Below, in pieces: positions 41,816 to 62,401 of a stretch of DNA of 64,000 nucleotides. The notes beneath the pieces were generated by a model. It saw only the letters and a list, made by a program, of their open reading frames with translations, had not been told where the DNA came from and did not search any database. The stretch comes from Podarcis pityusensis (taxonomy: Eukaryota): the NCBI GenBank assembly GCA_964106645.2, contig OZ067039.1. One strand, given 5' to 3'. Position 1 is the first letter of the stretch. Every line of letters starts with the position of its first letter. A program made the position numbers and the translations under genes.

Positions 41816-42232
41816 TTACAGGGGCCCAGGCTGCCGACGGACTCTGCCTCTCTTGCTTTCTAAAGGATGCTGCTGCCACTTTGGGCTCCATCCTTTCTGT
41901 CTCCGCCTTTTCCTCCGCTGGAGAGCATCGCAAAGCTCATCCAAATTAGTGCCAGGGGCGCCCATGGCCCATGAGTACCCTTTGTAATGCAGCTGCAGCT
42001 CTGACGCAGGGATGGTGCCGTGTGGGCCTCCTGCTTCTTCTGTGCTCTTGCTCCGCCTGGTGGTGAAAGCCTCCATGGCCTGGTGCCCAATGATGCGCAG
42101 GCTGTAGTAGGTGAGGGTCTGGGAGAAGGAGTGCTCCGTCCCTTGGCACTGGTAGAGCCCAGCATCCTCCTGGGTCAACTGATTAATCAGCAGCCCTTGC
42201 TCTAGGATTGAAAAGCGGCCCATGCTCCCAAT
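41816..42232 (-). CDS. SEMA3D-like last coding exon 17 (Ig C-half, basic tail)
   Basis: ttgcag|IGSMGRF...GLLINQL...DAGLYQC...LDELC...RRKRRR...[12 protein letters not shown]. Confidence 0.95.
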   Translation of the reverse strand: MGSMGRFSILEQGLLINQLTQEDAGLYQCQGTEHSFSQTLTYYSLRIIGHQAMEAFTTRRSKSTEEAGGPHGTIPASELQLHYKGYSWAMGAPGTNLDELCDALQRRKRRRQKGWSPKWQQHPLESKRGRVRRQPGPL

Positions 42233-60200: not shown

Positions 60201-62401
60201 GGTGCCCACTTATTATTTATACTCGTATTGTGCTAATCCAAAGAATTTGGCCTTTGACCAACATAATCCAAAGAGTCAAGAATGGCCTTAAGCCTGTGTC
60301 TAGGGTATTATGCCAAAGTCTGACTGGAATTGGCAGGATTGGCCCAATTGAACAGATTACAGGATTTCATCCACTGCTGGGATGGTTGCCATGGAGTTAC
60401 TAGAGAGGGCAGAATGCTGGTGTGGAAGTTAATAATACCTGAAGAGAATAAGTGATTGTCTCCTAAATCCCTCATCACTTATTCATTCTGGGTATCTCTA
60501 CAAAATGTTTTTGTACTGTCTGCAGAAAGAGCAAATGCACAAGACATCTTCTGAAAAAGGCTGGAAGAGTGGGCAGCTGTCTTCCTTCCTTACTATGGAA
60601 AGCAAATTCCCTGTTCCTCAGAGAAGCAGGTGATATTGCAAAACACAGGTAAAAAGATAATGCTGGCTTTTTTATCTGACGCAAGAAGTCAATGCGACAA
60701 TCATTCCCTTGCTCTTAAATATACAATAGTATGCATAGAGGGAGAAGTTGGATGCAGAATGAGTTATACCACATCTAGATTCGGATACCTGTAATACTGG
60801 CCTTGTGGATGCAACTCACCTCCACTCCAGCTCTGAGATATATGAAGGCACATATGGGCTGGTAGGAGCCTGTTCCACAGGCAAACACATGAGTGCTGTT
60901 GAAATGCTGGAGAAAGCGGATGAAATTGGCACATTCCATCTAGTAAAGGAGTCAAAGATGTAAAAGATGGCAGCATTTTACTTGGACATTTTTGGTTTGA
61001 CCCAGTATTCCCACCATGAAAGGAAAGGAAGTATCTGACTTACAAGCTATTTTCAAGATCTGCATCTAACGGTATTTGCTGGGCGATAGGTGGTTTTCAA
61101 AATCTGGTTTTCAAAACCAATATTGCAATATATCAATATATTACGATATCTGAAATAAGGAAGGAGCTATGCAGAGGCAAACAGGACAGTGTCCTGGCAG
61201 CTGCTACTACTTAAGGGTCTAAAACTGAGAAATTGTGATATTATCAATCACCTCATTGTGATATTGTGAGGTTTAGCTGCAGATAACTTTGCAATGTTTT
61301 GCTGGTGAGTTATTGCGATGTTTAGCTGGTGAGTTATCACAATGCTGAAAACCAAATATCGCCTAGCCCTTACACACATTGTGATTCAGCAATATATTGC
61401 CAGCTCAAATATTATGAAACAATTATCACGATGTGAACTTCAAACTGATTTTGGACGATATATTGATATGTTGCCCAGCCCTACAAGCTACTGATGCTGG
61501 ATTGAGGCCATAGCCTGATTTACTCATCTACTTACCATTTGAGAAGTTGCTCCTGCCTGTGCACATCCACAAATTACTAAACAAATGTCTTTATACATTC
61601 TTAGCTACAATCCTATATCCTATACTTACATGGAAGTAAGCCTCAGTGAATTATAGACTATTAATTGTACATTTGTATGAATGGCTTTAGAGCATGTAAG
61701 AATGGTTTTTTGGTTTTAGGATTTATAGTTTTTATAGTATTTTATTTTATTTTTGTGTCGTATACTGCTTTGATGGCCCCAGGTTATAAAATAGTTTATA
61801 AATTTGTAAAATAATGATGGTGGTAATAACAACATCAACATCAGTTCAGTGGGACTTACTTCTGAGTAAGCATGTATAGGATTGCATTGTAGTTAGTGAT
61901 CACAGATCGTTCAGGAGGCACCTCAACCTAAACCATGGAGCCAAAAGTCCACCATTTTTACCTTAGGATTCTTCCCAGCCAGTCTGCAGTGCTCCATTTG
62001 CTCTCTAGGAGCTGGCCAGAAAATCTGGAAGAGAAAACACAACCAAGAATGTGGATGGAATCCTTTGCAGCAGTAAGTGGGATATGCACATGGGAAACGA
62101 GGTTCACTCACCTAATGAGACGTCCCTTCCACTTCTCTCCCCACACTCCCTGTATAGCACATGGACCAAATCCTGATGGCCGTTTTCTGCTTTTCTCCCT
62201 TCCCACCCCACCCCAAAGCAACCTCCTTTGGCACTCTGACCTTCTGCGGCTCTTTGTTGGGGCTGTCAAGGTTGAGCAAAAATATGTGGTCCTTAGCACC
62301 TGCCATCAGCCATGCCCTCTTTTCGTCCACAAGTAGTGTCTGGAGTGCCAGCTCATCCTCAGAGTCCAAGAGCAGCTGAGAGCTGTTTAATCTCAGGAGG
62401 T
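41816..62401 (-). CDS. Class 3 secreted semaphorin, semaphorin-3D-like (candidate SEMA3H-type paralog); exons 2-17, 5' partial
   Basis: Spliced translation gives a Sema domain ([62 protein letters not shown]), PSI ([13 protein letters not shown]), Ig (STFLEC...DAGLYQC), dimer Cys (LDELC) and a basic tail. The exon layout matches the SEMA3 family. Open frame, GT-AG throughout. Confidence 0.95.
42459..42592 (-). CDS. SEMA3D-like exon 16 (134 nt, Ig N-half)
   Basis: [37 protein letters not shown]...EE|gtatag. Confidence 0.94.
43112..43342. mobile_element. Tc1/mariner-type MITE, family D (truncated relative ending at 62815)
   Basis: TA|CAGTTGTACCTTGGAAG...CTTCCAAGGTATGACTG|TA. Confidence 0.8.
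43562..43611. repeat. (CA)n microsatellite
   Basis: Seen directly. Confidence 0.9.
45143..46215 (-). mobile_element. 5'-truncated CR1 LINE (RT C-terminus plus 3'UTR), non-functional
   Basis: [26 protein letters not shown] and [20 protein letters not shown] are CR1 ORF2 motifs; ATTCTGTG-type tail near 45145. Confidence 0.92.
45758..45945. mobile_element. hAT-type MITE nested in CR1
   Basis: 8-bp TSD TTGACTCA (45750-45757, 45946-45953); imperfect TIR core GCCAACT/AGTTGGC; CR1 sequence resumes on both sides. Confidence 0.75.
47114..47178 (-). CDS. SEMA3D-like exon 15 (65 nt)
   Basis: ctgcag|G CGA GCC CAA TGC...AAA G|gtgagt; (R)[21 protein letters not shown]. Confidence 0.88.
48042..48199 (-). 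CDS. SEMA3D-like exon 14 (158 nt, PSI)
   Basis: [41 protein letters not shown]...TKK|gtgagt. Confidence 0.94.
48554..48595 (-). CDS. SEMA3D-like exon 13 (42-nt micro-exon)
   Basis: ttgtag|[14 protein letters not shown]|gtaagt; matches the family's 14-aa exon (recalled SEMA3D HSSIILNMELSLKQ). Confidence 0.9.
49884..49972 (-). CDS. SEMA3D-like exon 12 (89 nt)
   Basis: ctgcag|[30 protein letters not shown]|gtactg. Confidence 0.9.
50831..50903. mobile_element. 73-bp hAT-type mini-MITE
   Basis: CAGTGCTTT/AAAGCACTG ends; near-identical 8-bp flanks CTGGTAGG/CTAGTAGG. Confidence 0.6.
51948..52170 (-). CDS. SEMA3D-like exon 11 (223 nt)
   Basis: [23 protein letters not shown]...DVLFLGT|gtagag. Confidence 0.95.
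52705..52849 (-). CDS. SEMA3D-like exon 10 (145 nt)
   Basis: [13 protein letters not shown]...FNGPFAHKE...IPYPRPGT|gtacgt. Confidence 0.95.
53476..53545 (-). CDS. SEMA3D-like exon 9 (70 nt)
   Basis: ttccag|[23 protein letters not shown]|gtgagt. Confidence 0.94.
54542..54656 (-). CDS. SEMA3D-like exon 8 (115 nt)
   Basis: [38 protein letters not shown]|gtaagt. Confidence 0.95.
55618..55763 (-). CDS. SEMA3D-like exon 7 (146 nt)
   Basis: [27 protein letters not shown]...RVARVCK|gtcagt. Confidence 0.95.
55915..56140. mobile_element. Tc1/mariner-type MITE, family A
   Basis: TA|CAGTGGTACCTCG...CGAGGTACCACTG|TA. Confidence 0.9.
57173..57301 (-). CDS. SEMA3D-like exon 6 (129 nt)
   Basis: [14 protein letters not shown]...[13 protein letters not shown]|gtaagt. 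Confidence 0.94.
58653..58755 (-). CDS. SEMA3D-like exon 5 (103 nt)
   Basis: ctgcag|[34 protein letters not shown]|gtaaga. Confidence 0.92.
59422..59663. mobile_element. Tc1/mariner-type MITE, family A (inverted relative to 55915), nested in an older repeat
   Basis: TA|CAGTGGTACCTCGGG...CCCGAGGTACTACTG|TA; internal 16-bp tandem duplication. Confidence 0.88.
60820..60939 (-). CDS. SEMA3D-like exon 4 (120 nt)
   Basis: tactag|[40 protein letters not shown]|gtgagt. Confidence 0.94.
61078..61483. mobile_element. Degraded hAT-like MITE with a duplicated right end
   Basis: GCTGGGCGATA at left; TATCGCCTAGCCCT (~61357-61370) and TTGCCCAGCCCTA (61471-61483) at right; short internal repeats. Confidence 0.5.
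61962..62024 (-). CDS. SEMA3D-like exon 3 (63 nt)
   Basis: [21 protein letters not shown]|gtaaaa. Confidence 0.93.
62241..62401 (-). CDS. SEMA3D-like exon 2 (161 nt)
   Basis: ttacag|AC...AAG|gtcaga; DLLRLNSS...[23 protein letters not shown]. Confidence 0.93.

Follow-up and report, generated by a model that had tools for sequence, protein, structure and literature searches.

An intact class 3 semaphorin gene beside a RAD54L2-like gene in Podarcis pityusensis belongs to an unnamed sister family of SEMA3D

The stretch of DNA analysed here (the window) comprises 64,000 nucleotides of contig OZ067039.1 of the lizard Podarcis pityusensis (NCBI GenBank assembly GCA_964106645.2). On its minus strand a chain of semaphorin-like open reading frame (ORF) pieces runs from position 62401 to 41816 and forms 16 coding exons, numbered 2 to 17, of a class 3 semaphorin gene. 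Tail-to-tail with it lies a plus-strand gene of the SNF2/Helicase_C type. The semaphorin exons are bordered by AG acceptors and GT donors throughout, their phases are compatible and the sole stop codon is the terminal one. Together they sum up to 2180 nt which, with one base from exon 1, gives 726 codons plus stop, exactly the length of residues 46–771 of the annotated Lacerta protein. An initial annotation, made from the sequence alone, had proposed 16 exons in one open frame of about 726 amino acids, which the present gene model matches exactly. Exon placement was guided by tblastn of retrieved orthologues, and each exon was translated in its own phase. Database searches with the window sequence were run exon by exon.

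All exons have their best match in squamate members of a sauropsid family termed X below, with 94–100% identity (values in brackets refer to these matches). Coding exon 2 (62241–62401, minus strand as for all following exons, 161 nt, 96%) starts in phase 1 with a codon split between exons 1 and 2, carries the motif AKDHIFLL and is free of stop codons between its AG and GT borders. It is followed by exon 3 (61962–62024, 63 nt, 100%), exon 4 (60820–60939, 120 nt, 100%), exon 5 (58653–58755, 103 nt, 94%), exon 6 (57173–57301, 129 nt, 100%) and exon 7 (55618–55763, 146 nt, 100%), the last of which holds an 11-residue motif quoted in the initial annotation. Exons 8 (54542–54656, 115 nt) and 9 (53476–53545, 70 nt) were placed by their splice borders and their best match to squamate X. 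Pfam recognises the Sema domain on exon 10 (52705–52849, 145 nt, 3e-15) and on exon 11 (51948–52170, 223 nt, 4e-18), which contains CPSETYDPL and corresponds to residues 356–428 of mouse Sema3A. After exon 12 (49884–49972, 89 nt), the borders of the short exon 13 (48554–48595, 42 nt) and its junction to exon 14 were set by eye against orthologues and are borne out by spliced contigs. Exon 14 (48042–48199, 158 nt) encodes the end of the Sema domain and the PSI domain (Pfam 1e-5), and exon 15 (47114–47178, 65 nt) a linker that has KK(R)RAQCQN, including an additional cysteine, at the place of the usual KRRxRRQD. The first half of the Ig domain is found on exon 16 (42459–42592, 134 nt, 100%). Exon 17 (41816–42232, 414 nt plus stop, 96%) adds the rest of the Ig domain (Pfam ig 7e-4), the dimerisation cysteine, a basic tail with a 14-residue run and the terminal GRVRR.

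Coding exon 1 with the signal peptide lies outside the window, and the gene model is 5'-incomplete owing to the window edge. At the orthologous loci exon 1 is found upstream of exon 2 by 5.5 kb in Lacerta and by 7.8 kb in Elgaria. The last 1.8 kb of the window aligns to intron 1 and exon 2 of Lacerta at 90.5% identity, and the site matched by position 64000 is separated from Lacerta exon 1 by 3.4 kb, on the downstream side. By this comparison the signal-peptide exon of the window gene would be located about 3.4 kb past the window edge. The N-terminus of the Lacerta orthologue consists of a hydrophobic stretch followed by VPRLRLSY.

The domain order is that of a class 3 semaphorin. The Sema domain, which reaches 1.3e-53 on the Lacerta orthologue, is followed by the PSI domain, with a match above the Pfam cut-off and a conserved CCLARDPYC. 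The Ig match is slightly below the cut-off; relatives in the family bear PF28354, PF13927 or PF00047. Behind this single Ig domain comes a short basic C-terminal tail with RRKRRRQK, PKWQQH and GRVRR, the stop following 6 codons after GRVRR, and neither a transmembrane segment nor a glycosylphosphatidylinositol anchor signal was found. The cysteine ahead of the basic region is retained within DELCDAL. Exonwise Pfam matches and the comparison of the tails thus bear out the Sema/PSI/Ig/basic-tail architecture of the initial annotation. Its SEMA3D-type motifs were recovered as well, with PKW on exon 17 in addition to those located above. In our comparison panel CPS.TYDP is limited to SEMA3D, X and a related fish family K.

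To place the gene, families were defined by an exhaustive exon 11 search and three word searches with full-length matches. The best 120 matches of each search were considered and give at least the members described here; each representative stands for its whole cluster. Family X comprises bird, turtle, crocodilian and squamate genes named 'semaphorin-3D-like' or 'semaphorin 3D', among which the Lacerta agilis protein (P0252) is the closest to the window gene among the matches listed. Family K covers ray-finned fishes, from bichir, sturgeon, gar and bowfin to teleosts, under the names 'semaphorin-3D(-like)' in NCBI and 'Si:dkey-49n23.1' as a UniProt/Ensembl projection. True SEMA3D (family D) includes mammals, the Swiss-Prot entry zebrafish SEM3D, amphibians, coelacanth, lungfish and sharks. 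An X or K gene occurs together with a D gene in Rhineura, chicken, green turtle, Paramormyrops, reedfish and Chanos. Summed over the exons, the window gene scores 1517 bits with squamate X, 1200 with other X, 950 with K and 877 with 3D, and the remaining paralogues reach at most 715.

A maximum-likelihood tree of 59 database proteins (782 columns, LG+C20+F+G4 by posterior mean site frequency, supports given as UFBoot/SH-aLRT), in which the Lacerta agilis orthologue stood in for the window gene, recovered X (100/100), K (100/99), D (100/100), X+K (100/100) and the union of X+K with D (100/100). The stand-in falls within X (100/100), and branching within X and within K agrees with the species tree. 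The stem branch of X is long, 0.57 compared to 0.2 for K. Since sharks are found inside D, the split between D and X+K is older than the divergence of sharks and bony vertebrates, if the root lies outside the three families. X+K and true SEMA3D are sister families, and the window gene is an extra class 3 semaphorin and not SEMA3D. The proposal of an extra class 3 gene distinct from SEMA3D is therefore upheld by the sister position at 100/100 and the six species with both genes; the tree suggested along with it was run here with X, K, D and the other class 3 paralogues.

SEMA3D (collapsin-2; zebrafish sema3d) shares with X the domain order and CPS.TYDP, which no other paralogue of the panel has, and both retain the dimerisation cysteine, PKW within a basic tail and R-x-R-R as the terminal site. 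Within one species, however, SEMA3D is a distinct gene that lies on a different chromosome or contig, with about 40–75% identity per exon; it is present in mammals, evolves slowly and retains KRRxRRQD after the PSI domain, which sauropsid X does not. The fish si:dkey-49n23.1 or 'semaphorin-3D(-like)' genes form one orthologous family with X and have the same GRVRR-type terminal site. In contrast to X they have kept KRRARRQD, do not carry the extra cysteine and sit on a shorter branch.

The gene is intact, constrained and spliced. Comparison codon by codon and exon by exon, with counts summed, gave a ratio of nonsynonymous to synonymous substitution rates (dN/dS) of 0.155 against the Lacerta locus (717 codons, dS 0.074) and of 0.156 against the much more distant Elgaria locus (dS 0.45), i.e. 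the gene is under purifying selection. In 13 small public runs, 5–17% of the sampled words from a 10-kb stretch were contained, approximately its exonic share. Contigs from four of the runs (four organisms, four studies), aligned to positions 47050–52900, skip exactly the five introns between exons 15 and 14, 14 and 13, 13 and 12, 12 and 11, and 11 and 10; in one run, one of the five joints is absent. The skipped stretches end with CT..AC on the plus strand, corresponding to GT..AG on the gene strand. Both junctions of exons 11, 12, 13 and 14 are covered in this way, as are the junction of exon 10 to exon 11 and that of exon 15 to exon 14. The earlier judgement that the locus is not an obvious pseudogene agrees with all of these results, and the look for RNA that had been recommended yielded exactly spliced contigs in four runs that may be RNA.

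In its processing sites X deviates from the other families. KRRxRRQD after the PSI domain is absent in 13 of 13 X rows and present in all 10 K and all 19 D rows as well as in the rows of 3B, 3C, 3E, 3F and 3G. Squamates have KKRRAQCQ in its place and turtles and birds EKR(R/Q)ARCQ, always with a new cysteine. The terminal site is GRVRR in X, GRVRR or ARVRR in K and KRNRR in D. With the post-PSI site gone and a cysteine gained, the sauropsid protein is predicted to resist the cut by which other class 3 members have their Sema part separated from the Ig/basic part; we infer altered processing, perhaps with an extra disulphide, in sauropsid X.

Best matches in the PDB, obtained with exons as well as with the Lacerta orthologue, are Sema3A structures. 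Among solved relatives Sema3A (1q47, 4gz8, 7m0r) is the closest, aligned with the Lacerta orthologue over residues 33–587 with 617 bits, which offers the Sema–PSI fold and action through neuropilin and plexin-A as a working model. Sema3A is nevertheless a distant paralogue (approximately 1.1 bits per aligned residue), and receptor preference is not deducible from it. By homology with Sema3A and Sema3D, the protein would be secreted by means of the signal peptide encoded in exon 1, which is seen in the Lacerta orthologue only, and would dimerise by a disulphide bond at the cysteine immediately ahead of the basic tail. Proprotein convertases may cleave the terminal GRVRR, upon which the C-terminal arginine could dock on neuropilin. 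The Sema domain would then engage plexin-A and give rise to a guidance signal, usually a repulsive one. Secretion, dimerisation, processing and receptor use are thus predictions from sequence comparison, as are the mechanism of duplication and the proposed loss in mammals treated below.

The convergent neighbour has its last coding exon in an ORF at 30321–31469 on the plus strand, recognised by its domains and by cross-species identity, and the stop codons of the two genes are 10.3 kb apart. Lacerta, Elgaria and chicken chromosome 12 show the same convergent arrangement. With identities of this last exon of 99% to Lacerta, 87% to Elgaria and 70–84% to chicken, the neighbour is the same gene in all of them. 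The initial annotation placed the semaphorin beside RAD54L2. The SNF2/Helicase_C neighbour and the conserved synteny stand, while the name comes from size, domains and synteny; a search with its low-complexity last exon gave no named match, and we refer to the gene as RAD54L2-like. In fishes, DCAF1 follows the K gene in Paramormyrops and sturgeon. X+K thus has a conserved neighbourhood, with the RAD54L2-like gene in sauropsids (three lizards and chicken chromosome 12 in the synteny comparison that had been advised) and DCAF1 in two fishes. Furthermore, SEMA3B is located on the same chicken chromosome as X, and SEMA3F on the same Elgaria contig. In human, DCAF1 and RAD54L2 adjoin at 3p21.2 between SEMA3F/3B and SEMA3G, in the order DCAF1–RAD54L2–TEX264, and SEMA3C, 3E, 3A and 3D are found on 7q21. 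Upstream of the chicken X gene (L001, chromosome 12, positions 1–5168) we observed a 1180-aa OCRE/G-patch protein of the RBM5/6 type. Genes of this type lie beside human SEMA3F, and the chicken block thus joins regions that are 1–2 Mb apart in human.

The neighbourhood and the tree fit a doubling of four tandem ancestral genes as a block, as 3E and 3G as well as 3C and 3F also pair at 100/100. X+K would then be the 3p21-type counterpart, by whole-genome duplication, of the 7q21 gene SEMA3D, a good fit that is no proof. Of the earlier proposal of a whole-genome-duplication sister on the 3p21-type paralogon, the sister clade and the RAD54L2/DCAF1 setting are confirmed and the whole-genome duplication itself is fitted. 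According to literature, mammals possess seven class 3 genes, SEMA3A–G (PMC6387129). That ancestral vertebrates had eight of them (3D/X, 3E/3G, 3C/3F and 3A/3B), that X was kept in ray-finned fishes and sauropsids and lost in mammals, and that the sauropsid form gave up the inactivating post-PSI site and gained a cysteine, is a scenario to which we give an even chance.

Taken as a whole, we assign a probability of roughly 85% to the reading that the window holds a functional secreted class 3 semaphorin gene, its 5' end outside the window, of an old unnamed family X+K that is the sister of SEMA3D, dates from before the split of sharks and bony vertebrates and resides in a RAD54L2/DCAF1 setting. 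Several points weigh against it. Exon 1 is outside the window, and the completeness of this copy would follow from the Lacerta locus. Neuropilin binding and plexin-A/D signalling are predicted, the visible signs being the cysteine for dimerisation and R-x-R-R at the C-terminus. The runs with spliced contigs were only guessed to be RNA; contigs devoid of introns are what cDNA gives. The link between the sauropsid and the fish neighbourhoods leans on the human order of DCAF1 and RAD54L2, and the pairing of 3A with 3B, although needed by a neat model of four pairs, is weak (56/69). No mammalian sequence was among the X or K matches listed, which is weak evidence for a loss, and no amphibian, lungfish, coelacanth or shark member of X+K was among them either. 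Logan fragments near exon 11, checked for amphibian and mammalian copies, were all squamate-, archosaur-, bird- or fish-like.

As NCBI and UniProt call many members 'semaphorin-3D' and SEMA3D is the nearest named paralogue, the window gene might be regarded simply as the SEMA3D of the species. We rejected this assignment: X and K fall outside the true 3D clade, which is anchored by mammalian and Swiss-Prot sequences and has a support of 100/100, both genes co-occur in the six species, and the chicken X gene lies on chromosome 12 next to the RAD54L2-like gene. Moreover, true 3D of the garter snake scores 410 bits against the window, compared to 1300–1550 bits for squamate X, and the probability of the assignment is negligible. 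The unseen exon 1, the long stem branch of X and the loss of one conserved processing site would be in line with a duplicate that is silent or in decay and has kept its reading frame open by chance. This reading is hardly compatible with 726 stop-free codons, a dN/dS of 0.155 that hardly changes between two depths of comparison, spliced contigs in four runs and a gene kept from squamates to birds and fishes, and we consider it highly improbable. More room is left for an origin of the ancient split between X+K and SEMA3D by local or segmental duplication with relocation instead of whole-genome duplication. Local duplication is frequent in this family, whose genes stand in tandem clusters, and the timing from the tree is relative only (before the split of sharks and bony vertebrates). 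On the other hand, the pairs 3D/X+K, 3E/3G and 3C/3F each join at 100/100, and on the human map every one of them consists of one 7q21-type and one 3p21-type gene. This is the pattern of a block duplication, and it makes the local origin unlikely, though less so than the other alternatives.

The initial annotation also labelled the gene 'SEMA3H-type', in reference to an extra class 3 gene of zebrafish. Zebrafish sema3h, too, belongs to class 3 and has no namesake in mammals, which speaks for an orthology with the window gene. The fish orthologues, however, are named after another gene of zebrafish, si:dkey-49n23.1, and the label is not supported by these names. None of the 120 listed fish clusters is named 3H; all are called si:dkey-49n23.1 or semaphorin-3D(-like). 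Because UniProt/Ensembl projects the name si:dkey-49n23.1 even onto the orthologue of the non-teleost reedfish, the fish orthologues appear to be one-to-one with that gene and not with sema3h. In addition, one paper groups sema3h with the Nrp2-binding semaphorins 3E, 3F and 3G (PMC8725463). Neither the 150 representatives of the exon 11 search nor their named clusters included zebrafish sema3h, the word searches being aimed at X, K and true 3D. A better candidate for sema3h is a separate '3F-like' clade in the tree, and an orthology of the window gene with sema3h is, judged by gene names, very unlikely. This '3F-like' clade (P0075, P0437 and P0115, from horn shark, cichlid and tortoise) is sister to SEMA3F, and a newt protein named '3A-like' (P0140) is only moderately similar to Sema3A; either of them could be the sema3h family.

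With the sister family of SEMA3D as the preferred assignment, the window gene is an unnamed paralogue in a well-known family and not a new kind of system. In the literature searched, X+K was neither named nor studied, and sema3h was mentioned only in passing. The description as a largely uncharacterised ligand is correct to this extent, whereas its novelty was overstated, as annotations of birds, turtles, crocodilians and squamates already list the gene under the name 'semaphorin-3D-like'. Chick and zebrafish, the classic models of semaphorin guidance, both appear to possess this ligand under a misleading SEMA3D-type name, which could confound orthology calls, the interpretation of knock-outs (redundancy with sema3d) and expression studies. 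X+K would also complete the block-duplication picture of the class 3 family and be a further case of a signalling ligand that disappeared in the lineage leading to mammals. That sauropsid X has given up an otherwise almost universal processing site is a testable functional change; if true, sauropsid X would be a guidance cue without the usual off-switch.

Some minor observations concern the introns and the Elgaria locus. Three intronic stretches of the window (48226–49009, 49402–49597 and 50186–50381) were covered very deeply in each of the four runs and attracted numerous contigs with loose ends, the picture expected of transcribed interspersed repeats. In Elgaria (L004) orthologous exons 10–15 are present twice, at 34077–40658 and 44156–50737, 10,079 bp apart, pointing either to a tandem duplication or to an assembly artefact. 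Intron 15 of the window gene contains, at 45538–46218 on the minus strand, ORFs with the reverse-transcriptase-like stretch FADDTKLGG, which suggests a fragment of a long interspersed nuclear element, and, at 43471–43632, a microsatellite of the (CA)n type that appears as VCVCVC in an ORF.

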